Part shown: one piece after another, positions 4,467-27,717 of the stretch
How the letters are laid out: every line of letters starts with the position of its first letter
How positions within the stretch are numbered: position 1 is the stretch's first letter
DNA from: Macrostomum lignano
Taxonomy: Eukaryota
Reading direction: 5' to 3'
DNA: 64,000 bases
NCBI GenBank assembly: GCA_002269645.1
Contig: NIVC01000862.1
Location: forward strand, 1 to 64,000
Program-made: the position numbers and the translations under genes
Notes under the pieces: model-generated
Seen by the model: the letters and a program-made list of their open reading frames with translations, nothing else
What the model was told of the DNA's origin: nothing
The model's database searches: none

Positions 4467-4486
4467 CATATATCCATATATCTATC

Positions 4487-6198: not shown

Positions 6199-6980
6199 AG
6201 AGTCTCTATATAACAGTCTCTATATAACTGAGTCTCTATATAACTGAGTCTCTATATAACTGAGTCTCTATATAACTGAGTCTCTATATAACTGAGTCTC
6301 TATATAACTGAGTCTCTATATAACTGAGTCTCTATATAACTGAGTCTCTATATAACTGAGTCTCTATTTAATTGAGTCTCTATAGACTTAGGAATAAACT
6401 TTGTAGAATTCTTTGGAAAGCTCTCCTATTAGTTGCCGTCCCCTGCTTCTGGTTTGTTGCTATATTAAAAAAACGCTGAATAATATCTACTCATCATTTC
6501 GGCAAAAGTGGGGTTTACTTAAGCCGCACAAAAGAGCTGTAAGCATTGCGCAATGTGGTTGTATTTTGTAGTTATTTCTGGTGGCTCTGTGGGGAGCAGA
6601 TGAGCAATTGCACTCAACTCAACAAGTGGGAATTATGGATGTGGTGGCCACGTAGAATGCAGAATGGGGATGGTACTCAGCACGTGGGAATTAGAGATGT
6701 TCATTTTCATAATCCTAAATCAAAGCATATTTATTGTACAAGCCTCAAAGGTGCAAAAATAAACCCTAACCTCGGCGTCTGTATTTGAGTGTTTACTTTC
6801 GCCTTTTAGTCTTTACTTTAACCTATTTTACTTTTTTGATCATTTATACCCCACTCAAGCTTTAATCCTCAATGTTGTCATTGGCTCCATACCTAAGTCT
6901 ATAGGGACTCAGTTATATAGAGACTCAGTTATATAGAGATTCAGTTACATAGAAGAAGTTATATAGAAGAGAGACTCGGT
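6199..6980. mobile_element. Foldback/MITE-like element with arms of 16-bp tandem repeats
   Basis: About 11 copies of ctgagtctctatataa (6199-6392, ending tctctatagacttagg) are mirrored by cctaagtctataggga + ttatatagagactcag units at 6891-6980. A related arm lies at 1632-1810. Confidence 0.6.
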
Positions 6981-7766
6981 TCAAACTGATTCAATTAGTT
7001 TCTCATAGCAGTCAACTAAACATGCTCAAATAAAACAAAGCCGCCTTTAACACTTAATTATTTTCAGTACAATTTCCATGAGTTGCGCAGCTCAACTCAC
7101 GAGGTAGCCAGCTCGCTCACACTTAGTGTTACATGTGGTCTAGATCTATACCCAAGGCTACTTTCCCTATTCTGTTTCTACTCCAAGAAATCCGAATTAT
7201 GTAAATATCCTCAATCATAACTTGTGGGGATTTCTGATGAACAAACGCCAGCCAATATCAACAGTGCGTACTAGCCCTTGGAGTGTTGTCAGTTAAGCTC
7301 CAAGCCAAACATTGGCTACACAAAACTTTCAAAATGAAAATGGAGTAAACACAGACAAGTTCAGATACTGGATAAATGACTAAGAAAGTTTGTGCTGCTT
7401 TTCATGAGTGTGAAAAACGATAAGTCGCAGATAACGTTGAGAGGGGTTGGCCGTGGGAGTTCAATTAGCGTCGCGAGATCACGCCACAAGGTCCAGAGCC
7501 CACTCACCCAGCCGATTTAGTCTGGAAGCGAAGAGATTGCAGACAGGGGAGGGAGGGGTATCTGCATTCTGATTGGCTGTTTAGTGGCGTGGGTTGACTG
7601 CTGGTGATTGGGGTGTCGGCTTGACTTTTTAAGTCAAAATTATTGCAAATTGTGATTTTTAACCTGCTATTTCTACTGAAGTATTTTGCACTGCAAAACT
7701 TTTAGAAGCTCTTTCTATTTTCTAAGTTTTGTTTATACTTTGTTAAAACTGAACAACTTAGCAACA

Positions 7767-8989
7767 ATGGCGTCTACAATCACCAAGAAGATTAGGATTA
7801 AAATCTCCGGCCTGAACTGGGCTACATGAATACAGCGGTTACTGGCCTTGTGACCGAGTTGAAGGAGACCAGGTCCTACATGAAGAACGATGTTCGTGGC
7901 GAAGTTTTTTCATTCGTCTTGGTGGACGACTCGGCTGAGATGAGAGTCAGTCAGATGAGAGAAAGTTTGTAATACTTCCGATGCTGTTCGCGTAGCCGGC
8001 GGTATGGTAAAGACTTCGGATCCGAGATACTGGTACAACTGAACGAACAATCCTATGGAGGTATCTCTTTCAGTTGACTCCAAGGGATCAATATATCGAA
8101 GCAATGAAGTTCCGACTGTTATTGAACGGGCGTGTAACTATACTGAAATAAGCGACCTTCAAAACGTACGCCTGCAAGGGTGAGTTGCATTGTATCTGTC
8201 TACTTGTATGTATTGTATAGACAGACAGTATACAATATTATTATATGTACAATAGACATAATAGTATAGACAATGTGAATTGTATATGCAATCGTGTAGC
8301 ACTGTAGTGTATGTTCGGCTTTTATAAATTATTTTGACTAGATTAGCAATCCAATCTATGCCTTCATCCCTTTATGTTGGCTAGTCTAGCAGTCCATTAT
8401 ATTCATTCGACCATTGATGTAGGTAGGATTCAAATGAACTTCAAAAAGCGTTTTAAGGTTTTAAAATACTTTTCAAATTGTCCCCTCTTCATTGCCTTTT
8501 ATTAGAAATGTTGATGTCCTTGGAGCAATCGACACACTGCAGCAGTCCGAGAAAGTCATGACGAAGGCTGGGAAGCGAATAAACGTAGCTAAAGTGACTC
8601 TTGTTGACCAGTCCTGTCGTTCTGTCTCCTGCACGTTTTGGGGGTCGTCCTCCGATCAAGCTGTCAATTGGAGTGTCGGCGACATTTTGTCGATACGACG
8701 AGCAAAAGTACAGGAGTACGCCGGCGCTGTTGTACTTGGATGTACTTGCTCTGAAGTTCGGCTCAACTCGGACGACACCGAGGTTACGACTTTGACTGAC
8801 TGGTACACGAATGCTAAGCAGAGCGATACTGAGTTTCAACCTCTGGGTGCTCCGTGTCCATCAGGCGCGGTTGGCGGCTCTTCTGACCAAAGGGGAAACA
8901 ACAGGCGAGTTTTTATGCAACTACCGGTTTCGCACGAATCCTTCCGGGATGTATACGAAATTATCTTGGACTTTGGAGAAGGAATAAAG
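7767..8989 (+). pseudogene. RPA70-like OB-fold gene (DBD-A/DBD-B-like), two exons 7767-8179 and 8506-8989, exon 1 disrupted
   Basis: Exon 1 encodes LVTELKETRSYMKNDVRGEVFSFVLVDDSAEMR (RPA70 DBD-A-like) with a stop and frameshifts. A phase-2 GT-AG intron joins LQG|NVDVLGAIDTL. Exon 2 encodes KVTLVDQSCRSVSCTFWG (DBD-B-like D-x-S...V...T-x-WG). Confidence 0.7.
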
Positions 8990-9464
8990 GTGCGCGTGTT
9001 CATTGTATATGTAACTTATTTAATGTTTAGTATCTTTCTTCTGTAGTACAGATCTATGCACTCTAACTTACTACAGTATTGTGCTAGCCCTTATGGTTCC
9101 TACTGAAATTATCTCACCAAGTTGCTGCAGTTCTTTAGTTCTAACTTCTCTATCCTATAAATTGTCACTAATATATCTACTTTGAGTAGCGTTGGCAGCC
9201 CTACTCTATGACTCTTTCCTAGAGATTTCTAATTTCACACGGTTTCCTAGAACCCTTGTAATAGCGTGTAGTGCCCGAGCGGTAAGACACTGTCTAATTC
9301 CCTAATTCAGTTCGAAAGTCTAGCGTTTTCCGAGGATCAAGGGTGTCCAGCAGTAGCCAATCTATTCCCCTAATGCCTAATCCCTCAACACCTAATGTCT
9401 ATTATAAGCCTGTACGGTTTTCTTAGGATCTGTACGATCTCGATCTCCCTACTCCGGTTTCTAT

Positions 9465-9665
9465 TCTTGGGTCTCCACGACCTCAAGTTTCCTATTCAGA
9501 TCCTTAATCTTGGGTCTCCACGACCTCAAGTTTCCTAACCAGATCCCTAGTTCTGGTCTCCACGACCTCAAGTTTCCTAACCTGATCCCTAGTTCTGGTC
9601 TCCACGACCTCAAGTTTCCCTATTAGGATCCCTAGTTCTTGGTCTCCACGACCTCAAGTTTCCTT
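9465..9665. repeat. Tandem repeat, 5 copies of a 42-44-bp unit
   Basis: gtctccacgacctcaagtttcc recurs at 9471, 9514, 9556, 9598 and 9642. Confidence 0.95.
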
Positions 9666-10738
9666 ATACAGTAAATAAATTTTAAGGTTGAACTTCAATT
9701 ACTAAAAGTTTCTCACAAAAGCGATTGCCAAACAAGCAGAGAAGGTTGTTTTATTTTCATTTCATTTTTTTCATTTGGTAAGTTGGGGCTATCAAGGGGC
9801 CCTGCGCATCAGCCCTGGGGAGGGCTCTTACGCAACTAATTTGTTTTAGTTTCCAGTTTGAGCGATACATTTAGTATTTTGTTGGAGAAATAAAACAAAT
9901 ATTTTCTAATAAATAATACAATAATGCCATTTAAAAACTTAAAACAAATAATAGAGTACAATTAATCAATATAGAGTCAATTTAAAGCAAATGGTTGAAG
10001 TATTGAGTAAAACAAATAAATATAAATAAATATGATTGATAAAACTAAAACAAATATTGGGGTGTAAATATGTACAATGAATCACAAAGCAGTAATGTTT
10101 TGAGTGTTTTGGTTTAAAAATGGAGGCCAGCTTCTTCACTACTATTGAGAGTAGCTAGACACGGCTATGATATAGGAACCTGCCTATGTTAGTTAACCTT
10201 ACGAAAACGAAGGATTCCCTGGGAGGACTTGGAGAATACCGTAAGTAGAGAGGTCCCTACCCACAGGTGAGGGTTTTGCAAATTTTGTTAATCGGCAAAC
10301 CGGACGCAACAGCATCCCAACAAAGCAAGCCCAACTGGTAAGTTCAGCATTCAGATATCCTTTCTTAGTGATAATTATAAGTAGTGGACCTGGCCCCACA
10401 ATAAACAGCATTTTGGGTGAATAATGTAAAACATGTTAGAGAAGTATAAAAGATAATACTGTGAGAGGGTGTAAACGTTAAAACAGAGTGTGATTGGTAC
10501 TGTACTTTGAATGTCAAGTAATTAGCACAGCATTACATAGAATCGTAAGTATTCCCGACCCCGGACAGAGGCGCTCGAGTTATAAATTGAATCACATTTG
10601 CGTAATCTGTCTGAGTTTAGTAGTAAAGGGGACCCTGAACCCAGGTCTGGCCTATTCTTTGGTGTCATTTTTGAACCCATGGATTTCACTCTCCAGGGCT
10701 TTTTTGTACCATTTTTTAGCAAGATTGAGGAGTCGATC

Positions 10739-12609
10739 CTAAACCATAGGCATCTTGGTGACCTGGTGTAAGAATGTGATTTTAGTATAAGGCGGAGCAT
10801 CTATAGAGAGGCGAAGAGCCTTATTTTGCAGAATTTGTAACTTGTTGACAAGGGATGCCAGTAGATTGATGAGCACTGGAGCGCCGTAAGTCATTGTGCT
10901 CTCAATGTAAGATCTATAGATGAGGCGAAGAGCCAGTTGCGAAATCCTGGAGTTCTTAGCCATCCTAGCTAGCGCAGCCATTTTGGCAGTCGAAGACCAA
11001 GCTACCTTGTCGATATGGGCCCTAAAGTTAAGCTGTTTGTCAAGAACCATCCCTAGGAAGGTGACGGAATCATAGTACTTGATTTTGTCTTGTCCAAGTT
11101 TAATTGGAGGATCGTCTGGACCTGTTTTGTTCCCATTAGCTTTGAAAAAGGAAATGGCTTTACTTTTGGAGGGATTGATGACTATGCCCAAATTGTCAAG
11201 CCACTTTTTGAGGACAATGAAGTATGAGTTAAGCCTTTTAGCGGACATAGTGGATTTTCTGGCAGAGGCCCATACTGCTAAGTCGTCAGCGAACTGACTA
11301 AAGCGGACCTTGCTGTCAGTGGGCTTGGGTATAGAGCTAGCGAAGATGATAAAGAGCAGGGGCGAGAGCACCCCACCCTGCGGGACACCCGCCGTTGGCT
11401 GAAAGACCTCGCCCCGGGCTCCTCCAACTATAATTCGTGTCATGTTGTGCGGGATTTTACTTTTCCAGATTTTATATTTAAGGTAGTCCAGCCAGACTCC
11501 ATCAAAGGCTCCTTTGACATCAAAGAAGACCCCCAACGTGTACTGCCTCAACTGAAGCATTTTCAGCACATCGTCGGTGAGTCTTACTATATTGTCATAT
11601 GTGCAGTGATCGAATCTGTAGGCACATTGTTCCTCATTAATAATTCCTAGGTTTTCTAAGATAATTCTAAGGTTTTTAGCTAGAATCTTCTCGTAAAGTT
11701 TACCAACACAGGAGGTTAGGCTGATGGGTCTATAGCTTTCCACGAGATTTTTGGATTTGTTTGGTTTAGGGATCATCTTGATGATGGCCTTTTTCCATTG
11801 TTTAGGGAAGTATCCTATGAGAAAACTAGAGTTGTAAATTTTTGCGAGCACTCTGATGGAGTCCGGGCTGAGACCATATTTCAAAACCATGTTAGGAATT
11901 CTATCCGGACCGGGAGCTCCTCCTGACCTAAGTTTTCTGCTCTCCCAGAGCACGTCCTGGTCAGTAATGTTTAGGATATCGCTTTCGATATCTTCTTTAT
12001 CTGGATCAATCGGGTTCGCGTGCTCTTTATGGTATGAAAGTGCCGCGATTATATTTTTATGGGGTTTGAAGATCTCATGATCTTTGTACTTGCTGACTTT
12101 TTTCGTAGATAAGCGAGTCTTGGTTGGGGTGAGATTGCATTTGATCTTTTAGAAAGTCGCTGAAGAGTGAAGCTTTTTCTGCCTCAGTCTCGGCATGCGA
12201 ATCCTTGTAGACTAGAAGGGGATAGTTGATCATTTTGGACCTTTCTCCTGTCATCTTTTTGATGTCAATCCAAAATTTTTTGGGTTTTTTTTGTAACTAG
12301 TTTTAGCAATTTTGTGGCATAGATCTTCGAATTTCCTATATCTATGCATACGTATGGCATTTCGTATTTCTTTAGCTGCTTGATTGGCTTGAACTCTGAA
12401 GTCGTCTATTCTAGTTTTTTGAATAATTTTCTAATTTTCCTCCTATGCTTAATTTTGTTAATAATATCTGGGGGAAGCTGCTCCCTAGGGTCCCGGTTGG
12501 GTACAACATCCTCAATGGTGTCATGAATGCACTGATTTAGCAGATCAACCGCTTTATCTAGGTCCTCAGGTGTGGAGAATCTACAACTGAGAAGCTGTTG
12601 GTTGCTAAG
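10739..12609 (-). pseudogene. LINE ORF2, reverse transcriptase part (open 10739-11953; several frameshifts in 11953-12500)
   Basis: Motifs GAPGPDRIPNMVLK, WKKAIIKMIPKP, YRPISLTSCVGKLYEKI, FFDVKGAFDGVW, GVPQGGVLSPLLF, SQFADDLAVW, FLGMVLD. No RNase H follows. Confidence 0.92.
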
Positions 12610-12913
12610 TGTTGTGTCGTGACTAGGAGCCCGTAAAAGGGCCGTTCGTCTAACTAACCTTTTCTTACTTTTTCTTACTACTCTACTTTAAGTAGTGCAG
12701 TTAATAAATTATTCGTATATTGTATTGTGAAACGTATTTTTAATCACGTGACATTTTGGCGGTTAAATTTATCGATCGTGTAACAATTTACTGTTAAATA
12801 TCAAATATAAGCACGGGTTGCCCTAAGTGGAGCTCATACCTTTTTCCCGGCAAAAAAAGTCTTACCTGCCACGTACTCGTGTTTTCCTGTGTTAGTCTGT
12901 TGAGACACCACAT

Positions 12914-12927
12914 TGGCGACGAGGATG
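12914..12927 (+). promoter_or_regulatory. Primer-binding site complementary to the 3' end of tRNA-Ser(GCU)
   Basis: TGGCGACGAGGATG lies 1 nt after the 5' LTR and is complementary to ...CAUCCUCGUCGCCA (tRNA sequence recalled, not looked up). Confidence 0.75.
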
Positions 12928-14854
12928 AGCGGACCCAGCCTTCCAGCACCAGCGCCTTTTCTTCCCGTGAGCGGCCAACCGGCAGTCCTGTGGCCAAGAT
13001 GGCTGGACGCGTTCGAATTCTTCTACACGGCATCCCAGTTTCGGGAGTCGGAGGGGCAATCCGAGGCGGAACCCACAAAGAGGAATCTGCTGCTCCACCT
13101 GCTCGGATTCGAAGGCCAGCGCATTGCCAAGGCGAGACAAGCACTCACGGAGGGAGATTCCTTCAAGGAGGCGAAGGCAAAGCTGGACGGGCGGGATCTT
13201 CGGAGAGAAGCCCAACGTGATGGTGGCTCGCTTCCGATTCCGCCAACGACACCAGCTGCCCGGCGAAGACGCAGAGTCCTTCGTGGCCGCGCTCAGGGAG
13301 CTGGCCGAGCCCTGCGAGTACGGAAATCTCCGAGACCAGCTCATCAGAGACCAACTGGCAGAGAAGACTGGCAGCGCTCGCATCCGAGAGCGACTGCTGA
13401 CGGAAGACGCGGCTACTCTCACGCTGGAGAGGGCCCTCGCCATCGCCGTCACCATCGAGAAGGCGTCAAAGGGCTGTCAGGCTCTGATGGAGACGGAGCC
13501 CGTGCACGCGGTCCGGCAGGCGCAGAAGCCAAAGGCGAAGTGGAGCGGCGCGGCGGAGCCAGCTAAGAAAGGCCAGCAAAGTCGACCCGCCGCCAAGGCC
13601 TGCTCTCGCTGCGGACGCAGTCACGGCGACGGCAACTGCCCAGCGAAGGGGCAGTCCTGCAACAGCTGCGGCAAAATGAACCATTTCAGCCGTTGCTGCC
13701 GGAGCAAGGCGCTCCAAGTGACCGGCCAGGCTCAGGACGGCCCGGACGAGGCGGTCACTATATACGCCGTGCAGGGAGACGGTGAGATCCGTGCGCAGCT
13801 GCGGTTCGGACAAGCAGAGGTGCCGGTCAATACTCTGATCGACTGCGGCGCCAAGGTGTCACTGTTGAACGCCGACACGGCCGCGCTCCTGACCGAGGTG
13901 CTACCTCAGCCGACAACGATGAAGCTGCGCGCATACGGCGGCAAGCTGATCGATCTCGTGGGCCAAGCGGTGGTCCCCGTTAAGCACAACAACCGGTCGC
14001 TGCAACACCTATTCTACATCGCGAAGCACGGCGACAACATCGCAGGCCGAGACCTCATGGATAAGCTCGGTTTCCATGTGAGCCTCTCCGAGGACGTCAG
14101 CGAGGTGAACAGCGTCGTGGAGCAGCTGGAGAGGCAGTTTCCAGCGGCCCTTAGCGAGCAGATCGGCTGCTGCAGCGGAGCCGTGCACAAGCCCGTCATC
14201 GAGCAGCAGCTGGTGGAGGCCGAGCTCGACAAACTGGAAGTGGCTGGCAGCATTCGAGCGGCCAAGGAGGACTGCACGCCGCTGTCCGACGCCATCACCC
14301 AGTTCCTGGAGGTCTACCGGAGCACGCCGCACAGCCTGACGGGCAGGAGCCCCGCCGAGCTCATGCTAGGGCGATCGATGCGGACGATGCTGACTGCCCT
14401 GGCGCCGCCCAAAGACATCAATGAGACGGACGAAGGATGGCGACTGCGCGAGACCATCTACGACCGGCAACAGCGGACCAAGCGCTACACGGACCTACGC
14501 CGCCGGGCGCGAGTCAGCGACCTCCGACCAGGCGATTGGGTCCGAGTGCGGCGGCCCATCAAGAAGGGCAAGCTGGCCACGAGACTGTCCGGCCCGCTAC
14601 AGATCATGACCAAGGCCGGCGCCGCGTACCGGCTGAGCGACGGCACGACCTGGAATCAACAGGCGTTGGTCCCCACAAGCGCTAGGGCCTACGGCGACCA
14701 GGACGCCGAGCTCGACCCGCTGGTGCATGGCGAACTCTGCGGTGACAGCGATGCGGCGGCGACGGCGCAGCCGGCGGGGCTTCCCGGCGCAGTCCGACCA
14801 AGGCGCTCGGCCAGGGCCCGACGACCTCCGGAGCGGTACCAAGCGGGACTGTGA
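12925..14854 (+). CDS. Gag-protease fused in frame to the integrase C-terminus (one frameshift near 13190; RT, RNase H and IN core deleted)
   Basis: Gag WPRWLDAFEFF...RFRFRQRHQLPGED; zinc knuckles CSRCGRSHGDGNC and CNSCGKMNHFSRCC; protease LIDCGAKVSLL; then YRSTPHSLTGRSPAELMLGR and PGDWVRVR...SGPLQI. Confidence 0.85.
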
Positions 14855-15183
14855 TGTCCGTGCTCTCGGGAGGGGGGAAAATGTTGTGTCGTGACTAGGA
14901 GCCCGTAAAAGGGCCGTTCGTCTAACTAACCTTTTCTTACTTTTTCTTACTACTCTACTTTAAGTAGTGCAGTTAATAAATTATTCGTATATTGTATTGT
15001 GAAACGTATTTTTAATCACGTGACATTTTGGCGGTTAAATTTATCGATCGTGTAACAATTTACTGTTAAATATCAAATATAAGCGCGGGTTGCCCTAAGT
15101 GGAGCTCATACCTTTTTCCCGGCAAAAAAGTCTTACCTGCCACGTACTCGTGTTTTCCTGTGTTAGTCTGTTGAGACACCACA

Positions 15184-15962
15184 CTAAGTTTATCCTGAAG
15201 GGTCCCTCTAAAGGTTTCCCAGTCAGTGTTCCAAAAGCTTTTAGAGGGTTTTTCGCTCAACTTACAGTTAGGATCTAAATAAATTTTAATGATAATGGGA
15301 AGGTGGTCGCTATCTAGATCTTCTCCCACAATAACATTGCTGGTATGTTTAATAAGCTCCGGGGAACAAATTCCTAAATCAAGCACGTTCCTAAGGACTG
15401 AGCCGCTACGGTAGCTAACTCTGGTACAGTTCTCATAATCGTTAAGTATGGTTGGTGGGTTTGGATGAGAATCAAGCCAATCAAACAGCTGCTTGCCTGG
15501 ATAGTTGAATTGGGAGTCACCCCCAAGGGCTGGGTGGTTGCAGTTAAAGTCCCCGATAACTAAGGTCGAGGGTTTAGAGAATAGATGGTCAAGAAGTTGG
15601 GTGTTAAGCCGTGTTGGGGTTGGGTTCCTGTAGAAGAGGACCACATTAAGCTGTTTAAGTTTGTTATTTTTAAGATGAACTTCAAAACTGATAAGTTCGT
15701 GGTTGCAGTTGTCGAAAATTTTTTCAACATTCATAATTTCTAAATGATTTTTATAGACAACTGCAAGTCCTCTTCTACAGTTGGGAACATCAAGCCGGAG
15801 TGTGGCATAATCAGGTAAGTAGAATATATTGTTTTCCTTTAGGCAGGTTTCAGAGAACATTCCTATGTCTAGGTCTTGCTTGCTGACCCAGGAAGAAATC
15901 TCATAAAATTTGTTGCTTAATCCATTGCAATTAAGGTGCCCTATGTTTAGTGAATCCCGCAC
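15184..15962 (-). pseudogene. LINE ORF2, apurinic-type endonuclease domain
   Basis: LNIGHLNCNGL, MFSETCL, LVIGDFNCNH, LDLGICS and DSDHLPI are APE motifs. Removing the gypsy and one CTAAG gives the continuous reading QDKLS-NQQLLSC. Confidence 0.93.
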
Positions 15963-16058
15963 AGCAGACTGATCAGCGTGCCCATTAGTTTGAGAAAAAT
16001 TAAGGGGAGTTTTGAATGTTAACGGACAGATTTACGCTTAACAATTTGATATACGGGT

Positions 16059-16629
16059 TCAGGTTCCACCTCCGCTCGCTTGCGCGGCTTCGGTGTCTCC
16101 TGCCCCAGAAACAGGCCTCCCTCGACCCCTGAGCGCCGCCAGAACTTCAGTTACCGCCTGGATAGCGAGTTGCCCCGCTTCCCATTCGGTAAGCATCTGT
16201 CCCGGGTTGGCACCCATGAGTCGGGTGAGGGCCCGAAGTACCACCTCGAGCACCCCCATCCGGGAGATCAGGCCCCTCTCACTTGAATGATTGGCAGATG
16301 GGGCGGCGTCAGCTTCTTGATTGGGTGCAGACTGAGAGGCAGATTCAGGCACGGCTGCAGTCAGCGAAGACAGATTGGCTGAGAACGTTGAGGTCTCCTG
16401 GTTGGCCGGAGGATTGGTCAACGCTTGCGGGGCGGCAGCGGCAGCGGCGGCAGCTCGGTTCGAGTAGGCAATCGGTCCGAGGGTTGGCTTGCTAAGTCCA
16501 GGTCGCGCCGAATCGGCGTAGGAGAGGGGACCTGGGACGCCAAATGCCTCCCCCAGGGACTGACTACCAAATATGTCTTGAGTTAATTTGTTTGTGTTTT
16601 GTGCTCTGATTTTAGCGTGTGCTTTTTTA
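16059..16629 (-). pseudogene. LINE ORF1, C-terminal part (downstream of the CMC insertion)
   Basis: Removing 16630-25649 restores KEANEIAI-KKAHAKIRAQNTN in frame. Confidence 0.85.
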
Positions 16630-17000
16630 CCCGCCTGGATAAGTGGTCCGGCAGTTTGTCCGTATACACGTCCGGGTGTCATCCGGGGTTGTAATGTATT
16701 TTTCCCATTTGATTCGTCCGGAAAAAACCGGAGGAAAAGTTTAAAATCGGACCAAAATGTCTGGAAAAAAACCGATTGGTCCGGTTGAAATCCGGACTGT
16801 CATCCGAAAACTTGTCCGGAAGTTCATCCAGAATTAACCGGACCACATGGCGGGTTATTTTCCGGACAAAACCGGACGACTGCATCAGACGAGTAAACCG
16901 GATGACTACCCGGATCAAAAAGCGGACGAAAACCGGGCAAAGAGAGATTCACGTGATCCGGACGAAAATCCGGGAGAACATCCGGATGGAAAGCGGAAGT
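16630..17000. repeat. Subterminal TCCGG/CCGGA motif array (mirror array at about 25300-25647)
   Basis: Many tccgg/ccgga motifs in both orientations next to each TIR, as expected for CACTA-type subterminal repeats. Confidence 0.8.
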
Positions 17001-17199
17001 ACATACTTAGTACACTGATGAAAGTCACGCTGACTTTAATTCATGGCAAGGCCTTTAAATGCAGACGCGAAATCCAACGAGATTTGTGTTGAAATGTTTT
17101 AAATAAAAAAGAAGCTTTACAAAGACATATTCACGACTGGTTTCCAGTAACATTTTTTGTTTCCAAGTGGCACAGCTGAAGCTGCTTGTACGAAACTGG

Positions 17200-17659
17200 A
17201 GGTGAAAGGTTTTTTCCTAGAAGTCGATATAATGATTTCTTCAAACTTTTTACTCGAGCCACAGTCGTGTCCGAGATGGACGAATTTGGACGGCCTTCAC
17301 GTTCATCATCGTCCAGCTCCAGACAGCCGGAGCGGAATCGACCGAACCACTTGTACACCATCGTCTGGGATGGGGCTTCACTCTCAAGGGCCTTTTGAAG
17401 CGTCTGCAAGCATTCGGAGGCAGACAGGCCAAGCCGGAATTGGACCAGAATTGCGACTCGCCTGTCGCGCTCAGTCAGGCGCAGCACTGGAGCGGGGGTT
17501 TCATCACTTCTTCGGCCACTGCGTCGCAACATTTTGGCCAAACTGGCTGAAAATTTGTGTGAAAGGTGCCAATATCCTAAGGAAAAAGTTCATAAAATTT
17601 CGTTTGATTCGCTTGAAGATAAGTTTGGTTTTCCGCGAACTTATTAAGCAGCCCTCGTA
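17200..17659 (-). mobile_element. Truncated mariner element (5' TIR + Mos1-type HTH) nested in the CMC element
   Basis: The minus strand starts TA-CGAGGGCTGCTTAATAAGTT (mariner-type end). The protein RVAILVQFRLGLSASECLQTLQKALESEAPSQTMVYKWFGRFRSGCLELDDDEREGRP matches the mariner N-terminus. No DDD domain or second TIR is seen. Confidence 0.8.
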
Positions 17660-18076
17660 GTTATGCTGCACGAACACCCACAGCAGGGGCTTAAACCGGC
17701 AAGAACACTTTGTATTTTACGAACATTCATCATCATCACATCATCGACTCGACACATCTCACAAAATGCTAATATAGTAGGTGCAAAAAGTCACACTGAC
17801 CACAATCACCTCTCAAATCACGAAATACAAAAAGTTGGTGCATAAAGTCACACTGGCCACAATCCCCTTACCCCAATCCTCAAAGGGCCAGAACCACCCT
17901 GCTCCAATATTCTCAAATGGCCAGAACCACCCTGCTCCAATATCCTCAAATGGCCACAATCCCTTTCCCCCAGTCCTCTCTCCGTCTATCTCGAGATCTG
18001 TCCATGTCTGTGATCTGTCCCCGTCAGTCAGCTCTATTGATCACCAGCAATTCACGACCCTGTTCGTCCCTGATCA

Positions 18077-20000
18077 TCAATCGTTCAGCATCTCCAGCAA
18101 CAAGTCACTTGGACGACTGTCGCCGTCCACGTCGCCTGCGCTGAGAAACTGCGTCCCAGTGTTATGAGACTCCTCAGTCTGTTCGGTAATTATGCGCAGA
18201 ACATGTTCTGCAGAGGTGGTAGCCTTCGAGCGAGATGACTGGCCAGGTGTGCGGGCCGCAGTCGAACGCTTGGGTCGGCTGCGCTTCGGCAGTCCCAGCT
18301 GCAATCTCGCCGTCTCGCCGCACCGAGTGAATGCGCGATGCAGTTCGTTGCGGTAAATTGGCACCTCGGCGTTCTGCAGCCACTGCCTCGCGACAGCAAC
18401 TTTGGCCGGGTTCGCCGGCGCCGAAACGTACCCAGCAATTCTTCGGCCTGACAGGGATGAGTTCGCCAATTCTTGCGACGTAAAGACAGCCCTAAAGACA
18501 GCACGCAGTAGCGCCAAGCGCGTAAAGCGCCGCATGGCAACTGCGTCTAGGTCGACCGCCTGCTGATCTTCCATCGCCTTCTTATATTCTTTGTGTCGGT
18601 CTTCAAGTTCAGACCGGAGTCGCAAAGGTACAGAAAAAAACTTCTGGCTGTCGGAAAGGGCGACCAGTCCGCCGGTAGCAGAGCTAGTGGCGGTCCCTTG
18701 CTCCGCGTCACATGCGCGGATTAACGCGCGCGTTTCGGCAACAGACAGGTTGCGATCAGCGGAGAAGGTTGCCTGGTCGCCAAATGCGTCATCGTCAGCA
18801 GACTCGTCCGCGGAGGAGTGCGCGCTAGAAACAGCGTCACCAAAGGTATCATCGGGGCGCACATGTGATGCAGCTGCAGCAGCACCTGAAGTGGTTGCAC
18901 TTGCGGCCGGCAAAAGGCAATTTGATGCCCTGGCGAGCAGCGCGTTGGCGGTGTCGACATTACGCAGTAGGCAATTGTTGCGCGCTTCGGCCTGCTCGAC
19001 CTGCATGACCAGCTTCCGCTCCATTTTGGCCTGCACACTCGTCTTGTGCAGGAGCGTGCGGTTCTGTGCCAGCAGGTTGGTCTCAGAAGTACGGAGGAGC
19101 TTAAGTTCGCCACCTGCGTATGTATTTGAATTGGAAGGATTGACAGGTGAATCAGCTAACTTATGGTTTGCTTCTGCTTATATATGTGGACGGAATGCGT
19201 CAGTTGATGAATCTAGATGCATGCAGAATACGACAATGCAGATCGATCTGATGACCCCATGAGTAACTTAATCAGAAACTTACGCAGGGATTCGGTCAAG
19301 GCCTTCTCCCTTTGGAGCTCAAGCACGAGACCGCGACAGGAGCTGCAGGACCGCGGCAGCTCGGCGGGTGCCGCGTGGACGTTAGTCAAGCTGGCAGCAC
19401 CAGCAGCCTCCCTTTTCTTGTCGAATGGGCCCTTTATTAGTGTGCCCAGATAGCGCCGGGCCGTGCTACGCTTGCTCCGAGCTGTCACGACAGCGACTAC
19501 GGCGCCGGTGTTTAGAGGCAGCTGCACATCCGACCGATGCGAAATGATGGCACTGGTGGACATCAGGCTGGAGTCTGTTGACACTACCTCTGTTCGCTGG
19601 TGGAAGTCGGTATACTGAAATACAAAAAACCGGGCCTTGGCTTCGGCTTTAAACGGCACCATTTCAGGTTCGTTATCTTCTTCAGCGGCGAGTCGATTCC
19701 GCGGAATCGGAACTTCTTCCGAATGAGCAGTGCTATCGATGGCAGTCGGATTAGCGACGCTTAATCCACCTGGCGGATTTAAATCCGCATCTGCCACAGC
19801 TGCGGCGGCGGCGGCGGCGGCGGCTCCAGTCGGGACGTTGGCACCCGAATCGGTTGCCGTAGCCCGAGCCGACACCTTGGCGACACTGAATGGTACTCCT
19901 ATTTTCTTAGAAACACCAGACGGCTTCTTTATTGTTGCATGCGTTTTTTTGCCTCTTTACGTCTTTCTTTCTCCGAAGCGTCGCGACACGTGCGGCCCAT
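18077..20000 (-). CDS. CMC accessory gene: coiled-coil + BEN-domain protein (intron 19114-19283; start uncertain, probably ATG 20000 with a 1-nt slip in an A7 run near 19945)
   Basis: Donor CTGC|GTAAGT and acceptor TACGCAG|GT join TESL-R-GELKLL in frame. BEN-like segment LLRAVFRAVFTSQELANSSLSG...ANPAKVAVARQWL at about 18302-18535. A CxxC (CSSC) precedes the coiled coil. Confidence 0.7.
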
Positions 20001-20225
20001 GATGGCAGTTCTCGTGCACGCTGGAAAAGATATGACATGAGGTTTGCATTTCCGCGAGATCTGTACAGGAGTCATCGTCTCTGATCCTCGAGCACTATAG
20101 GTGACTGAGTACTTGGTTATGTACAACGGGTTCGTAAGGAGTTAGCAGCGGGACGGAATGAAATAACAAACAAGACTGACGGATATCACAAAGCCAAAAA
20201 AGCGCCGGTCCTTTTATATGTGTTT

Positions 20226-20325
20226 GCACTACAGCAACCTCGACACCATTGCACTTCAGCAACCTCGACACCATTGCACTTCAGCAACCTCGACACCATT
20301 GCACTTCAGCAACCTCGACACCATT
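20226..20325. repeat. 4 x 25-bp tandem repeat
   Basis: gcacttcagcaacctcgacaccatt x4 (first copy has one mismatch). Confidence 0.95.
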
Positions 20326-20582
20326 CAACTAAAAAGTTTAAACTAAAACTAAATACTAAAAATTCAACTAAAACAGAAATCGTCAACACAAGTAGAAAAA
20401 GTGTGGAAGGATGAAACAGCATATGAACAAGAGTTGCGCAGCAGTTCTTCTAATATAAAAAACGATTTCACCTGTCCCCACATGTGGGGAAATATTTCTA
20501 TCCCTATCCCTATGATATCCCTATCCCCATCCCTATTTCAACTAGTCCCCATGGCGCGACCATGGTGGGGAACCAAAGCAAT

Positions 20583-21353
20583 TCAATCCTTCTTTGCAGA
20601 CTTAGGTTTCGGCGCATCATAGGGAGCAAGGCCGCGAAGGGGCCGCATACGGCGCCTGCCTACTCTCATCAGCTCCACCGGAAGTGGTGGCGGACTGGGG
20701 GGCATGTCGATGGAAAAAAAGTTTGGCGCCTGGATAATCGGACGATGCCGATGGCGCCCATGGCGCTGCAGGCGCTGGTTGCGAACTTCGGCGGGCAGGT
20801 TGGCGTACCAGGCTTCACAGTCTGGGCAAGTTTGCGCAGGAAGGCGCTGCCTGTCATACCGCCGGCGTGAGTCGAACGTCGGCGGCGGCTCGTCCGGAAG
20901 CCTATTGTAGTCAGCAGCGTACTGCTTGCGTACTTGCGTACTTGCGTCAACTTGCGTACTGCTAGCGACTGGCGTCGGACGGCGGAGCTCTGAGGGCGAC
21001 AGGACTAATTCCTGGATCTCCTCCTGCGCAACTGCATCTTCGGACTCCACGGCTTGTGGAGACGAGTCCCAGGCCTGACTGTCCAACTGCTGGACATGGG
21101 CGACCGGTGAGCCTAGAGTAGTATGTGTGTCGTCCGACTCGACATCCGAATCTACCTGGGCGGCGGGTGAGCCTAGAGTAGTATGTGTGTCGTCCGACTC
21201 GACCTCCGAATCTACGGAATCTCCTAGTAGCTCATCAACCCCTTCGCCGATAAGTCCGTCCAAAATCAAGGACCAGTCTGGAGTCCCGGATAATTGACCC
21301 GTGCGCCGGGACATGTAGCTGCAGTGTAAGGCGGTGGAACCCTTTGTACTCAT
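20583..21353 (-). CDS. CMC accessory gene: 256-aa protein with a CtIP/Sae2-like C-terminal domain
   Basis: Intact ATG-to-stop ORF with an acidic S/T-Q-containing N-terminus. aa 163-220 RRRYDRQRLPAQTCPDCEAWYANLPAEVRNQRLQRHGRHRHRPIIQAPNFFSIDMP align without long gaps to the recalled human CtIP segment [58 protein letters not shown]. Confidence 0.8.
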   Translation of the reverse strand: MSTKGSTALHCSYMSRRTGQLSGTPDWSLILDGLIGEGVDELLGDSVDSEVESDDTHTTLGSPAAQVDSDVESDDTHTTLGSPVAHVQQLDSQAWDSSPQAVESEDAVAQEEIQELVLSPSELRRPTPVASSTQVDASTQVRKQYAADYNRLPDEPPPTFDSRRRYDRQRLPAQTCPDCEAWYANLPAEVRNQRLQRHGRHRHRPIIQAPNFFSIDMPPSPPPLPVELMRVGRRRMRPLRGLAPYDAPKPKSAKKD

Positions 21354-21990
21354 ACGTGCTAAGCAATTACTTGAACAACCGTTTGCAACCCGTTAGTGCA
21401 TGTACAAGAGGGCTGCAGAAAAGAGGAAAAACGTATACATAGTTACAGTGCAGCGGCAAATACAACTGTATTTCTAATTAATCAGTTATACACATACGTA
21501 TACGTAAGTAAACCAAACATTCAGTAATATGGAAACCGGTAAGGTATGAAATAGTACTGCAACATTCGTGCAGACGTATCAATAATAATTTAAGTGATTA
21601 TGAAATTATACTGCCTCATGTGTAATGTTTGCGAAACGAAATATTTATTATGATAATGAGATAATTAGTAGAACAATTTCAGTGCAGCTGACGTCTTCAA
21701 TTATATACTCGAGTATTGGGGGATCACAAGCTGAGAGGAAACAAATTCCAAATTTGCCTCTAAATTAGCTAAAGAGTTGAGAGCGCGACACAAGAATCAT
21801 CGATGAAACAAAATCGTCCGACATGCAAAAAAAGCGACAGTCGCCACAATATTATAAAGGGAATTATGTGCTTGAAATGAAAATTTTACACTACTTTCAT
21901 GGACCGCTATTTTCAATTCCATTGATATTATACTTATACTATTGAGGCGGTGATGATTAAACAGAAGCAACAGCTAATTAATACTGGAAG

Positions 21991-24815
21991 CTACTGGAAG
22001 CCGATCTGCGGGTGTGGCATAACGCATATTTTTGTGTCCGAAACGACGCACGACCCAACGATGGCAGTGGCGTGAACTCGAACGGTGCGCTCATGTGGTA
22101 ACGGACCGAATGGATTGACTAAGAGGCCTCGGATGTGCGCAAATCTGGCACCTCGGTTCTCCGAGTTGGCATGTACGGCACACAAGGCCTCCAGTGGGTC
22201 CACGACAGCGTCCTGTACGGGTAGGATGTGAAGGTTGACATACACCTCATCGTTGTCGCACTCGATTGCTAGAACGCGGCCGAACTGAAAGCTCGTCGGC
22301 TGGCATCCGGCAATGGCTACAAAGGCAGATGACGCCCGCGTCTCAATCTCCGGTAGATACTCCTCGAAATACAACCCTGACGGGAGAGACGCCGAACGCC
22401 AGCCGTGGGCCATGTTGTTAGGACGCCGTAGTAGAATGCCAGACGCCGCGCGCATGCATGTCGTTCTGTGCCGCGCGCGTGGCTGCTGGTCGTTGTCGCG
22501 GAGAAGCTCCTCAGCCTGCATGACTGCCAGCTCGCGCTCAACGGCTCCGACAATCTCCACATCCGTGCGGCGGGACCCGTGAATCTGGCGACGCAGTCTG
22601 GTATGCATCGATTCAAACAGCCCGGCGGATTGACGGTTCAGAGGACCTGCCAGTATGGCATACGGCAGCATGTGGCAGCAGACTTGATGGGCGTTGTATG
22701 ACAGAAATCGCAGCGAATAAAGGCGCGACAAGTTCGCGTGAAAGTGTCTCAGCCCGATTTCAACGTGGCGCAATTCTGCACGCGGCGCACCTTCTAAGGA
22801 CATCCAGAAGATGCACGTGGAGAGGATTAAAATGTGCCAGTAGTGTTCCTCTGGCAGGAAGTCATCAAGGACGAAAGGCGCGAACGCCAATAACCACATT
22901 GCGTATTCGTGGCCGCGCATGTGTCTGATGTCCTTGAGAAGCCTGACAGTGTGACGCTGAACAGTGCGAGGAACGCGAATGCGCCGAAGACGCTGGTCGA
23001 TGTGGCTCAGCCGCGCGTGCAGGTCCGGACAATTTGTGGCGCCTCGATCCGGTTTTTCATGACGCACGAGGAACAGCTGGTACAAAATATTGCGTACCAG
23101 GCCGGAGCACAACTGGTGCAGGAAACACGGTGGACAGCCGCGGACAAAGTCAAACCCGTGCAGTCGAGACAGCGGTGACAGGCCACGGACACCGAGGACG
23201 TCAGTCCGAATGTCGCCACCCTGCTGTGCGTGCTGCTCAGCGAGAGTGTGAGTGTCGCTGGTCGACCGCACTACAGTCTGAACGCATCCTAGACGTCTGG
23301 CCTGATTAAGCATCGCGTCAGTAACCCCGACGCCGTAGACTCGTCCATGGCCTGATGGATGCAATGATGTCCGGATGTAGCACTTCTCGCATCCGTAGAT
23401 AGCCGAGAAACGCTTCATGCACAGAGCGTCCGCTCTCGCTGGAGCGTCGAACAGCGCCATTAGCGGATGCAGATGCAATCGACGCTGAACCCCGAGGCTG
23501 TCGATATACTGTACACCATCGAAGCGCAGAGTATTCAGTGCATTTACGACGATTGGCAGAAAGGCGGCGGCATGGACCTTTTTCTTGCCGGCCCACACGC
23601 CACACTTCATCACGAATCGGAGCTTCAGCCGCTCGTGCACTTCGTTAATACTCAGATAGACGGGGCACACCTCGACATTGCTAGTGCAGAAAAGAGTAAA
23701 TCCGTCTGCACAGATGGTGTATGTAAGGTCGCTCCGAGTCTCGGGTTCGATGTTCTCGAGAAACGACTTGTACAGTTCGCTGTTGGCAAAGTGCAGCTTC
23801 TCTTCGTCCAGTGCAAGCCGTTCAATCGGAAATGTTACGCTCTGTAGAAGACCGCGAGATTCAACGAATGTTCGGATCTGCGCAGGTATGTCGAATAACC
23901 AGAAGTTGGCCACATTTTCCGACGTACAGTGCGCACAATTAGAGTTTCCTGGATCGCAGCGCTGCTCGGAATGTAGATAACAGTCGTTGCAGACAGTGTA
24001 ACATGTTGACGACCCCGAGATTGTTCCCCTCTTCTTCAAAGTTTCACGCAATGTTCGTCCGTGCTGAGGAAGGCGGTTGTCGGGTACTAGCCTGTGCAGT
24101 AGTGAAAGCAGCCTTGTCGTCCCGCTAACTGTCAGGTTCAGTTCCCTCGCGCAGGAGCTGACCTCCCAAATCGCCTCTCCGAGCGAAACGGGCAGAGCGT
24201 CGTGCCAATTGACTCCTGGAAACCCCGGGACGTCCTCGTCGTTGTCGGAGTCTGTGCTCTGGCCGTCAACAGACTGCGAACCTGGGAGGAATATATTGTG
24301 TGTGGTGAGCGTAGTGCGCATGTGTTCGGTGGACAGTGTGAGTGCAACGTGCAGGTAACACAAAAGTATCAAACATGAGCCATTGGGATGGATCCACAAT
24401 CCACGATAAGCCAACTCTCTGACTGGGACTCACCACTAGAGGAAGAATCCCCGTCCGAAGTGCTGTCAGAGCTCGACACCGGGTCCCCATTGCGGCCATC
24501 GGCCTGTGCGCCACCGTCGTCGGACTCTGGATTGTCTATAGGCAGGTATACAGACTGCTCATCTCGAGATCGAGATACTGTAGATGTAGAGGCGGATCCG
24601 CTTGCAGCTGCGACGACTGCAGCAGTCCCACTGGTGCCTGCGCCGCCGGACTGGACTTCGCCGGAGTCGACATCTGCAGAAGTTCCTGCGGTTGGACGCA
24701 GAGGTGATCGCGAACCTTCTTGTCGACTATTTGAATTGGCCAACGCACGCTGCCGCATGTACTCTCGCATGTACTGCCTCCGCTGTAACCGCGGCGGTAA
24801 ATCTGAATTGTCCAT
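21991..24815 (-). CDS. CMC/EnSpm DDE transposase, two exons (24815-24434, 24281-21991), about 890 aa
   Basis: A phase-1 intron (AGTG|GTGAGT ... CTCCCAG|GT) fuses the 148-aa and 807-aa track ORFs. Transposase_21-like motifs ICADGFTLF, CPVYLSINE, FDAPARADALCMK and YGCEKC, then CFLHQLCSG, GHEYAMWLL and YNAHQVCCH. Confidence 0.9.
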
Positions 24816-25649
24816 GCAGTTTGCGAGTCGTGCAGTACTGAAAGAGATTGGGTTGGTTTATGATGTCTAGATGCGCATATTCACTGTAGCACTATCTGCT
24901 GTGTGACCTATTCATCTATCCACGTATAGAATGGACGACATGTTTCTGAATTTCTGCATTTCAGTAACAACTCGGACGAGACCAATTTTGTCCAACAATA
25001 CCCGCTGTTTCCAAGACCTCTATGATCCCTATCTAACATAGTGTACTATCTAATGTGTTGCACACATGCAAAAGATGCGAAGGCATCGAACAACATCGAA
25101 GTCTCCCATCAAAATCAGAACGTGGGAAATGTCATACGGAGAAGTATATTTTTCTGTAGAACTTGGAGCATAAGAAATAGAACACGTTGTGCTGCTGTTT
25201 CTGGAACATGTGTTACAAACTGTGGGCATACAAGTAGGAGAAAGGTGCCATTTTCCACTATTCAATTCCACGTGCTCCACTATCACCCGGAAACATATCC
25301 GCTCTTCGTCCGGTTGTTAGGCGGGCGACAGCCCGGATTAAAATGCGGATGACTTTTCGGACGACAGTGACAATTCATCCGGCTAGTCATCCGTAAAGTC
25401 ATCCGACGCTTCATCCGGTTTTTGTCCGGGTAAACAAGCGGATATAATTCCGGACTAAAATGGACCAATTAAGTAAAAAAATCACCACTTTGTCCGGCTC
25501 TGATCCGGAAACTGGCCCGCTACTTTGTCCGGCAGCTTAAACCGGATGAATACCGGACGAAAAGCTGCATTTGTCCGGAATCGACCACCAAACGCGGACC
25601 AATGCGGACGACGGCCGGACGACAACCGGATCGGCTATCCAGGCGGGTA

Positions 25650-27717
25650 ATGGCAATTTCGTTCGCTTCTTTTACTTTACTACATCTATATAAGTAAGCT
25701 GGGTGTTCTTCGCCGCAGTTTGCGCATTTAAATTTGCTTTCTTTCGGGCAGTCTGCAGAATAGTGATCTCCCGCACATTTGTTACACCTGTAGGTTGCTG
25801 TGCATCTGTTTTCATGATGCCCTAATCTCTGACATTTTTTACATTGGATTGCTTTTACCGGAGCTAAATTAATAGACTCTTCGCATTTAAATTTGCTGTA
25901 ACCAAGGTAGACTCCATGCTGGATGCATCTTTCCATCGTGCCCTTGCTCTTAGTGAAGAGGCGGATGTGCGGAGTAGGTGCACCAGTTGCCCTAGAGACA
26001 ATGCGCACAGCGCCGTCAATTGGTAGTTGCTGCTCTGAGTCTGCCAAGTGTTTGGCTAGCATGTGTGCGTCTACGGTGATTGGCACATGTTTTACGATAA
26101 ACGAGTACGTTGTTGGTGATTTTAGTGGAGCACGCGCCTGATCATCTCCTTGTCTTATTGGCCTTTTGGCTGCTGTGCGTCGCGTGACTTCGTGGTTATT
26201 AATTTTATTTATTTTGAGAATAGCTGTTAATAGTGTGTTGAAGTCCTTAGGGTGATCTGGAATCGCGATGTAGCCGGAGCTATGGTATAGGTCCTTAACC
26301 GACCTGATGCGAACGTCTGGGAAATTTGTTTTCAGAAACCATTCGAATTTGATGGGATCTTTGCCTTCTTGGTCGATTTCAAAGATGACAGGTGCTGAGT
26401 TAGTAGATTTTTGAGTATTATTAGTTTTAGGATGGTAGTTTAGAGTTGTAGAGTTTAGTTGGCTAGATTGGTTAGATTGGTGAATGTTAGGTTGCTGAGT
26501 AGCTGGCAGCTTGTAGTTGTTAGGTGGTTGAGTTTGGTCGCCTGATTGCTGAGTGTCTGAAAGTGTCTGCTGATTGTTTGCATGTGGTTGCAGAGTTGCT
26601 GAGTGCTTCGGCAGAGTGCTAGACTGAGTGGCTGACTGTAGTGTACCTGATGGCTGATTTGACAGAGTGTGCCTGCTGAGTGTTTGTTGAATGTTGCTGA
26701 GAGCCTGATTGAGTGTGTTGTTTGGTGCTAGACTGAGTGGCTGACTGCTGAGAGCCAGTGAGCTGGTTAGCTGTTTGAGATTGCTGAGTGCTTGATTTGT
26801 GCCCCGAAGTGCAGCTGTTCGAACGTGATCTGATCTTTTTCAGATTTTCGGCTTCTTGCTCTGCTCTGCGACGAACCGAATTTTCGTCGTCCAGATCGCA
26901 GGTGATATCGTTGTCAAGAGGCTGCACGCAAGGGTTTGCAAGAGCAGAAGCAGGAGCAGGATCAGGTGGGATTCTGCTATCATACGTTAGCCTGAATGTT
27001 AGATTTACTCTTGCCTCTTTGACTTTTAGGTCCTTAAGGACGGCGTGCTGGAAGTGTGCCTGTGTCGCACCCCCCATTACCAGCAGAGAACCACTGGCGA
27101 GTTTTTGGGACCAAGCGATGTTGGTGGAGCCTTTGGTTCGTAAGTGGAAGTCACGTGCGGCACCAATAGAGATAGAGGCTATGGTCGGATTAGCCCCTAG
27201 TTCGTCTTCATCGTCTGAGTGCCAAGGAATGTGCACGGACCCATCTTTGTAATAATTTACGAGGCATGAGTTGAAGACGGGTAGACCAAACTCAGCGCTC
27301 AGCCAAGTAGCAAGACTAGTAACCAACGGGTGCCAGTCGTCATTGGCCGGAATCTTAGTTCCCCCGTAGCTATATTCTGGCCTGAACCATACAATTTTGC
27401 GGGCTTCAGGACGGCCTTTTGTGAGATGGTGAAAGGCTTTTGGCCTGGATTTCGTCGGTTAGTATTTTGAGTATTTGATTTTCCGAGCTCTTAAGAGCAA
27501 CCGGGTAGTAGCAGATGTTGCTGTTGTTTGGCAATGTGACAGTTTTCTCATCAGTCTTGTCAGCTATTGGAATTCGTATTATAGTTGTTTTACCATGTTC
27601 TTTTCTAACCTCTAAACTGTCCCTTTTAGGGGGAGGCAAAGGCTCAGCCCGCTCACCTTTGGACGTGCCGGTTTGCGGAGGCGTCTCGGGCAGCGGCGCG
27701 TTTGATGGAGACAGCAT
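25650..27717 (-). pseudogene. LINE ORF1, N-terminal part: AlkB dioxygenase - Q/S/T linker - gag-like region with three CCHC knuckles (two 1-nt frameshifts near 27435 and 26660)
   Basis: AlkB: RKIVWF..EYSYGG, FNSCLVNYYKDG, WHSDDE (HxD), FQHAV (H), RVNLTFR (R..R). Knuckles: CKKCQRLGHHENRC, CNKCAGDHYSADC, CANCGEEHPAYLYRC. Confidence 0.88.

Follow-up and report, generated by a model that had tools for sequence, protein, structure and literature searches.

Positions 1 to 64,000 of contig NIVC01000862.1, analysed here as a single stretch (the window), contain at 16630-25647 an apparently intact, CMC-like DNA transposon that is bounded by terminal inverted repeats (TIRs), has duplicated a TA target site and carries an open reading frame (ORF) resembling CtIP. 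As judged by sequence comparison, the C-terminus of this ORF is confirmed as a genuine CtIP/Sae2-type domain. On the same kind of evidence the gene is a host-derived, N-terminally truncated CtIP paralogue, an acquired passenger flanked by the transposase gene on one side and by two accessory ORFs, both conserved, on the other.

The original prediction had placed a transposon-borne CtIP-like domain with intact CxxC and RHR motifs at 20694-20867, which corresponds to residues 163-220 of the ORF 21353..20583. The strings it quoted (TCPDCEAWYANLPAEVR, RHRHRPIIQAPNFF, RPLRGLAPYDA and two STQ motifs) were all found on the minus strand where it had put them, and RRMRPLRGLAPYDA is read from 20654 downwards on that strand. 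BLASTP against a vertebrate CtIP C-terminus gave 47.8 bits with 37% identity across 60 amino acids. An exhaustive phmmer search of 1.84 billion representative proteins (E≤1e-3) returned 11 proteins. Eight of the ten newly returned matches exceed the threshold of Pfam SAE2, three of these eight also have CtIP_N, and the eleventh protein, P0015, is a fish CtIP fragment with a precomputed SAE2 hit. Comparison with an eight-sequence CtIP profile by hhalign gave 98.0% (E 2e-13) for the window sequence by itself and 99.0% (E 5e-18) when it was combined with its closest relative, P0079. The Pfam SAE2 model (PF08573) scored the ORF at 15.0 bits against a cut-off of 19.8 (E 0.052, profile positions 7-38 only), and the host orthologues P0079 and P0089 likewise fell under the threshold. 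A family alignment of 13 sequences has nine invariant columns, and the ORF retains every one of them. The CxxC and RHR columns are among them, in agreement with what had been read from the letters.

Other searches were negative. A word-indexed homology search with the 256-aa ORF gave no matches, and a calcineurin match, the only one from a solved-structure search, was judged spurious. ORFs overlapping the CtIP-like ORF on either strand had no Pfam matches. No second copy of the gene was present within the window, and no record of the exact product was found in the protein collection searched. Ten start-codon variants of the element ORFs and of a neighbouring AlkB-like ORF were absent from a 15-billion-protein collection, and no relative was recovered when the transposase and the CtIP-like domain were used in two scans of metagenomes and two of viral contigs.

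The boundaries of the transposon are well defined. The 12-mer CCCGCCTGGATA occurs exactly twice in the whole window, once at each element end and in opposite orientation, and the complementarity of the ends grows from 12 to 15 nt when the adjoining TTA/TAA is counted. The termini read CCCGCC..GGCGGG, and inward of each TIR lie ∼350 bp dense in CCGGA/CCGGAC/CCGGAT motifs. The element splits the CCHC gag-like ORF1 of a minus-strand long interspersed nuclear element (LINE), and in-silico removal of 16630-25647 together with one TA produced a single uninterrupted 335-codon LINE ORF1. When flank deletions of 0-5 bp were tried, the LINE frame was restored by 2 and 5 bp, and a real direct repeat exists only for 2 bp. 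The TA duplication is preferred as the only solution satisfying both. A piggyBac-like TTAA or Harbinger-like TTA/TAA duplication was rejected in its favour, because the flanks TTTA/TAAT and TTA/TAA are not direct repeats and neither 3 nor 4 bp restores the frame. With perfect TIRs, a TA duplication and an ORF1 restored on excision, the earlier placement of the domain inside a transposon holds. That its ends are perfect and its genes intact suggests that the element was active recently.

The interrupted LINE occupies 10739-16629 and 25650-26086 on the minus strand, with an endonuclease ORF at 15066-15962 and a reverse transcriptase ORF at 10739-11953. It is itself broken by a unit in which a 576-aa ORF without a Pfam match lies between two direct repeats (12607-12912 and 14879-15183), each 306 bp long and 99% identical to the other.

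A related element lacks the gene. Protein P0001, the match to the transposase (47% identity, 92% of the query covered), comes from the 10.2-kb Tara Oceans contig L001, a marine metagenome sequence. A complete homologous element was found on L001 at 97-10043, with 33-nt TIRs beginning CCCGC, termini CCCGCT..AGCGGG and CCGGA-type subterminal repeats at both ends. Its transposase and its homologues of orf3 and orf4 have the same order and strand as in the window. The gap between transposase and orf3, however, is ∼1 kb in L001 compared with ∼2.1 kb in the window; the 1-kb gap contains no CtIP-like ORF, and the CxxC...RH[RK] pattern occurs there in no frame. Because L001 has orf3 and orf4 and not the CtIP-like gene, the former are core genes of the family and the latter is an acquisition in the lineage of the window element. 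Unlike the TA/TA of the window, the flanks of the L001 element (AT at 95-96, CC at 10044-10045) form no target-site duplication, and more than one copy may have been merged into this element during assembly.

The closest relative of the CtIP-like ORF, P0079 (PAA54340.1, BOX15_Mlig004387g2), is a protein of Macrostomum lignano (phmmer, 56% identity, E 1e-24), and P0089 (PAA88737.1) is its 90% cluster mate. Identity to Mlig004387 is 53-56% across ∼110 residues. Two copies of Mlig004387 lie on different contigs, each between acetyl-CoA synthetase and EMP24 genes and neither near a transposase. They are multi-exonic (at least three exons) and encode a long disordered middle. P0089 starts with a helical, coiled-coil-like stretch (..LTDLAQQIDSLTAENRRLKFALES..) that is present, unannotated, just upstream of the P0079 start; the gene model PAA54340.1 lacks the N-terminal coiled-coil-like exon that PAA88737.1 has. 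This architecture is that of a host CtIP orthologue. In a neighbour-joining tree the window ORF is sister to M. lignano CtIP in 100% of 300 bootstraps. Compared with the M. lignano gene, nonsynonymous divergence (dN) is 0.41 and synonymous divergence is saturated (proportion of synonymous differences, pS, 0.82). A dN well under saturated pS suggests constraint on the captured ORF, but the comparison is confounded in that the true donor may differ from the M. lignano gene.

At the nucleotide level the window is linked to the M. lignano loci by the CtIP domain (82% over 62 nt) and by a ∼165-bp repeat at 47548-47712, which is 79-88.5% identical to four places in the two loci, and by nothing else. 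Two further CtIP-like loci were noted. A Logan contig (L004, SRR31628425) carries a CtIP-like ORF, P0081, with 47% identity to the window domain; its stop codon falls exactly at the Trp/Phe of NFW, the basic tail goes on in frame beyond, and upstream, in a different frame, there is an FHA-like stretch. The short CtIP P0080, from a JGI metagenome contig (L003), is encoded by an intronless gene and has an N-terminal coiled coil; ∼20-bp tandem repeats sharing GTCGGCGAGAGCAAC lie on either side of this gene (1-60 and 1450-1603).

Human CtIP and yeast Sae2 carry a cyclin-dependent kinase (CDK) site at T847 and S267, respectively, and we examined the corresponding column. With NFF anchored on NFW, human T847, P848 and E849 correspond to Gln208, Ala209 and Pro210, and BLASTP, MAFFT and hhalign agree in placing no Ser/Thr-Pro there. 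The ORF has no Ser or Thr at all between RHRHR and NFF, and no equivalent of the T847/S267 site was found. The earlier alignment of TP with AP was thus correct as to the missing site and one column off, as Gln lies under Thr and Ala under Pro. A Ser/Thr-Pro is kept at the T847/S267 column in P0083, P0087, P0088, the more distant P0080 and the vertebrates; a thrips RBBP8-like protein has it at the T847 position.

The original prediction had treated the missing site as an adaptation of the transposon. This idea is not supported, as both M. lignano host copies read VQAPNFF and thus share QAPNFF with the window ORF, which groups with them in the tree. Since the host CtIP shares the sequence, the loss is most simply explained as inherited from the donor lineage when the gene was captured; it is probably a lineage trait and not an invention of the transposon, and the donor would most simply be a flatworm CtIP of macrostomid type from which the T847/S267-type site was already gone.

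Nor does the proposed uncoupling from the cell cycle follow. The ORF contains seven Ser/Thr-Pro sites, one of which, S220-P (MPPSPPP), aligns with the vertebrate T859 column (FPSTQ), the next residue being Pro and not Gln. A phosphorylatable residue is therefore available through S220 at the column of human T859 and yeast T279, and [ST]-P is found here also in the two closest relatives, P0079 and P0080. The M. lignano host loci L002 (9720-13072) and L005 (10001-13315) have Thr-Pro at this column. Downstream, the basic tail is conserved as RRxRP[LYF]. Here the earlier comparison of RPLRGLAPYDA with RPKRRQPYNA identified the right region, although the match is between RRMRPL and KRRQPY and not between PYDA and PYNA. 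The STQ motifs (residues 133 and 139) arise from an 8-bp tandem repeat that is missing from P0079, and so do not represent a conserved SQ/TQ cluster.

The N-terminal half of the protein matches nothing. An AlphaFold2 model from the 13-sequence alignment showed no secondary structure in residues 1-140, where means of the predicted local distance difference test (pLDDT) over 10-residue blocks were 42-53 and mostly <50. The model has short helices at 165-170, 177-182 and 188-197 only, preceded by just a three-residue turn at 146. The first 140 residues are accordingly predicted to be disordered and without a coiled coil, as had been noted from the letters. An N-terminal coiled-coil oligomerisation domain was not found, nor was similarity to CtIP N-termini, and homology of the first 141 residues to the upstream region of the host protein was rejected (155 of 500 shuffles reached the score). 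This half contains a duplicated acidic repeat. Its SDDT core presumably resembles the SDT/SXT motifs of CK2 type through which MDC1 and Ctp1 bind the FHA domain of NBS1, and by analogy the repeat could be a substitute recruitment device.

What the protein would do for the element can be approached by analogy with Sae2 and CtIP. The reading that we favour, at a confidence somewhat below even, is that it is a transposon-borne monomeric module that docks on MRE11-RAD50-NBS1 (MRN) at breaks made by the transposase, where it would more likely help clipping or hairpin opening than block it. The protein would be expressed from the element as a largely disordered monomer. Its conserved C-terminal module (CxxC, RHR, NFF, Ser-Pro in the T859/T279 column and the basic tail RRxRPL) corresponds to the region with which Sae2/CtIP touches RAD50 and activates the endonuclease of MRE11. 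Docked on host MRE11-RAD50, it may promote the clipping or opening of hairpin-capped or protein-blocked ends, and so aid repair of the donor site. Without a tetramerisation region it would need a high local concentration or recruitment through the acidic N-terminal half.

Several published observations are consistent with this proposal. The monomeric C-terminal domain of Sae2 is 'the minimal unit required to promote MRX activity' and retains about one third of full activity (PMC6167383; MRX is the yeast MRE11-RAD50-XRS2 complex), and Sae2-MRX cuts hairpin- or protein-blocked ends (PMC11662671). In the modelled interface with RAD50, Sae2 makes contact through pS267, pT279 and its final 23 residues (PMC11662671). 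Of these three contact elements the window protein has retained two, namely a phosphorylatable Ser in the T279/T859 column and the basic tail at the C-terminus, and the M. lignano host relative evidently works without the T847/S267 contact.

A number of points weigh against the docking module. The monomeric Sae2 fragment is phosphorylation-dependent, with S267A largely abolishing its residual activity in yeast (PMC6167383). Human CtIP 790-897 by itself supports no single-strand annealing in cells (PMC7261161). A single copy of the CtIP-bearing element was examined and the gene is missing from the sole other family member found, so there is no sign of selective maintenance. As the element looks young, its ends being perfect and its genes undamaged, an ORF that is still open is poor evidence of constraint. 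The comparison of dN with synonymous divergence is confounded, as the host CtIP of the window genome could be near-identical to the captured copy. The N-terminal half, besides lacking matches, holds recent tandem duplications.

An alternative is an inert passenger, a transduplicated piece of host CtIP (roughly its last exon) that has no function for the element and is intact because this copy is young. DNA transposons commonly capture genes, and CACTA-type elements and Pack-MULEs often take up host gene fragments; fungal examples of capture by DNA transposons have been described (PMC12730594, PMC4289320). The absence of the gene from L001 and of a second copy from the window and the collections searched fits an inert piece, as do the recent activity indicated by perfect ends and intact genes, and homology that is limited to the C-terminal ∼115 residues, the unmatched remainder carrying fresh tandem duplications. 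It is less easily reconciled with a complete ORF that has its own ATG, a stop five residues past that of P0079 and the same strand as the other genes of the element, or with the retention of all family-invariant residues in a protein that differs from its nearest known relative at 44-45% of amino acids. We regard an inert capture as a serious possibility that nevertheless falls well short of even. This third option, which the original prediction did not raise beside activator and decoy, is about as likely.

The original prediction had also offered a dominant-negative decoy, in which the monomeric domain fills the CtIP site on RAD50/MRE11, blocks resection and steers excision sites to end joining. 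The absent oligomerisation region and the lack of a phospho-acceptor at the T847/S267 column would fit such a role, and the behaviour of S267A in the monomeric Sae2 fragment and the in vivo need for oligomerisation (PMC6167383), like the inactivity of CtIP 790-897 in cells (PMC7261161), count in its favour. The host orthologue also lacks the T847-type site, however, so that a protein without it need not be inactive in this lineage. A block of resection would moreover keep the donor copy from being restored from the sister chromatid, the route by which cut-and-paste elements multiply. We favour a local activator or adaptor over a decoy, which we consider improbable. The SAE2 score below the Pfam gathering level and the wider transposase-orf3 gap, into which something was inserted, might still suggest a chance match or a gene that is no part of the transposon, be it host gene, retrocopy or nested element. 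This reading is largely refuted and has very little probability left. The profile and exhaustive searches establish homology, and the ORF lies deep inside, ∼4 kb from both the left and the right end of, an element whose excision restores the LINE ORF. No TIRs, long terminal repeats (LTRs) or duplications were found in 19850-22050, which rules against a nested element, and no sense-strand poly(A) tract follows the CtIP-like stop, which rules against a retrocopy; a separate nested insertion is thus not supported.

A functional docking module would make this element the first known case of a transposon supplying its own MRE11-RAD50 cofactor, with a direct link between transposition and which break-repair pathway is used; the searchable literature yielded no description of a transposon with a CtIP/Sae2 domain. 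As a natural minimal CtIP, consisting of the C-terminal domain only and lacking the canonical CDK site, it could show what suffices for MRN activation. The most specific version, an active animal transposon encoding a 'mini-CtIP' that acts as a stand-alone MRN activator, without tetramerisation or canonical CDK switch, on the capped ends left by a CMC-type transposase, is in our view unlikely; if true, a transposon would encode the means to control how the ends of double-strand breaks are processed. As an inert capture, the gene would be an ordinary example of transduplication. The T847/S267-type site is considered essential in yeast and human. Its absence from M. lignano CtIP, together with the Ser/Thr-Pro at T859/T279, suggests that cell-cycle control of resection has been rewired in this lineage, and M. 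lignano, a tractable regenerating flatworm, is an organism in which this is testable.

The genes of the element are arranged on the minus strand in the order transposase, CtIP-like ORF, fourfold 25-bp repeat, orf3, orf4 and a mariner HTH_48 fragment (Table 1). Joining of the two transposase exons gave an 890-aa protein with zero internal stops that aligns with P0001 through the splice junction (residues 111-889). The exon 2 ORF is 35% identical to one M. lignano protein. Putative motifs, picked by inspection, are invariant compared with P0001: D237, D323, CxxC 342-345, Hx4H 576-581 and E601 in the numbering of the 807-aa ORF. The transposase had no Pfam match, Tnp2/Transposase_21 included, and its AlphaFold2 model, from a three-sequence alignment, was too poor for a fold test (mean pLDDT 33.9). 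Neither orf3 nor orf4 had a Pfam match. The mariner fragment has no counterpart in the L001 element and is probably a nested remnant.

Table 1. Positions of the transposon, its genes and the motifs of the CtIP-like ORF in the window.
Feature	Position	Strand	Remarks
Whole DNA transposon	16630..25647	-	9,018 bp; its four genes all on the minus strand
Left TA target-site duplication copy	16628..16629		
Right TA target-site duplication copy	25648..25649		
TIR CCCGCCTGGATA	16630..16641	+	3' end of the element in gene orientation
TIR CCCGCCTGGATA	25636..25647	-	5' end of the element
Subterminal region	16642..17000		CCGGA/CCGGAC/CCGGAT motifs abundant
Subterminal region	25280..25635		CCGGA/CCGGAC/CCGGAT motifs abundant
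Transposase exon 1	24434..24815	-	ATG at 24815; donor G|GTGAGT
Transposase intron	24282..24433	-	152 nt, GT..AG, phase 1
Transposase exon 2, through stop codon	21991..24281	-	
CtIP-like ORF	20583..21353	-	256 aa + stop; no intron evident
60-bp tandem duplication	21097..21215		Encodes acidic repeat VDS(E/D)VESDDTHTTLGSP in the disordered N-terminal half
8-bp tandem repeat CTTGCGTA x4.2	20925..20960		Encodes both STQ motifs
CtIP/Sae2-type C-terminal domain	20625..20930	-	Residues 142-243
CPDC (CxxC)	20817-20828	-	C176-P-D-C179
RHR	20748-20756	-	R200-H201-R202
QAPNFF	20715-20732	-	
S220-P	20691-20696	-	
RRMRPL	20637-20654	-	
25-bp tandem repeat x4.1	20224..20325		98% matches; between CtIP-like ORF and orf3
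orf3	19213..19875	-	Accessory ORF conserved in the transposon family; 40% identity to L001 7869-8198
orf4	18077..19036	-	Accessory ORF conserved in the transposon family; 30% identity to L001 8758-9279
Mariner-type HTH fragment	17131..17541	-	In the 3' region of the element; Pfam HTH_48, 3e-09

Just outside the transposon and directly upstream of LINE ORF1, on the same strand, an ORF at 26619-27326 (minus) encodes the C-terminal half of an AlkB-like 2OG-Fe(II) oxygenase (PF13532, 5.9e-29) followed by a Gln/Ser/Thr-rich tail. Further away lie two long short-period tandem arrays (39701-40775 and 45006-45658), the first of which has a 27-bp period with ∼95% identity and overlaps an ORF (39421-40263) with a marginal DUF6470 match. 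An intact 983-aa LTR-retrotransposon pol ORF with reverse transcriptase, RNase H and integrase zinc-binding and core domains is present at 60363-63314 on the plus strand.

Among known transposons, the element resembles the CMC/CMCT clade (EnSpm/CACTA, Mirage, Chapaev, Transib, Plavaka and ESTA) in its 2-bp duplication, its short TIRs with subterminal arrays and its extra ORFs. The putative motifs of the window transposase, picked by inspection, would match the signature described for this clade, whose members make 2-5 bp duplications, TA-duplicating lineages included (PMC12730594). The termini differ, being CCC..GGG in the window element and 5'-CA..TG-3' 'in most cases' in CMC/CMCT (PMC12730594). 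DNA transposons with accessory genes are known, such as the fungal elements with TET/JBP dioxygenases, KolobokP with a His-Me endonuclease and the captures by Helitrons (PMC12730594, PMC4289320). As in these, a non-transposase gene of host or foreign origin lies within a TIR-bounded unit and is found in only some members of the family. In contrast to these, the passenger here is the domain of a DNA double-strand-break resection cofactor.

With the CtIP/RBBP8-Sae2-Ctp1-COM1 family (PF08573) the ORF shares, in order, a basic RRRxDRxxL, CxxC, a helix, RHR, N-F-[WF], the T859/T279 Ser/Thr and RRxRP[LYF], and in all members, as here, the domain is at the C-terminus of the protein. It differs from the family in having Gln-Ala at the T847/S267 column, Phe for the Trp of NFW and Ser-Pro in place of Thr-Gln at the T859 column, in lacking the N-terminal oligomerisation coiled coil, in its length of 256 aa and in being encoded by a transposon. 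The derived features CPDCEAW, QAPNFF, MPP[ST]P and RRxRPLRxLA are shared with M. lignano Mlig004387. The closest parallels in architecture are engineered, namely Sae2 deltaN169 (residues 170-345) and human CtIP 790-897, which likewise consist of the C-terminal MRN/MRX-regulatory domain without the oligomerisation domain. These fragments keep the CDK site, on whose phosphorylation their residual activity depends, whereas the window protein lacks such a site in the corresponding column and has in addition an acidic extension of 140 residues that is predicted to be disordered.

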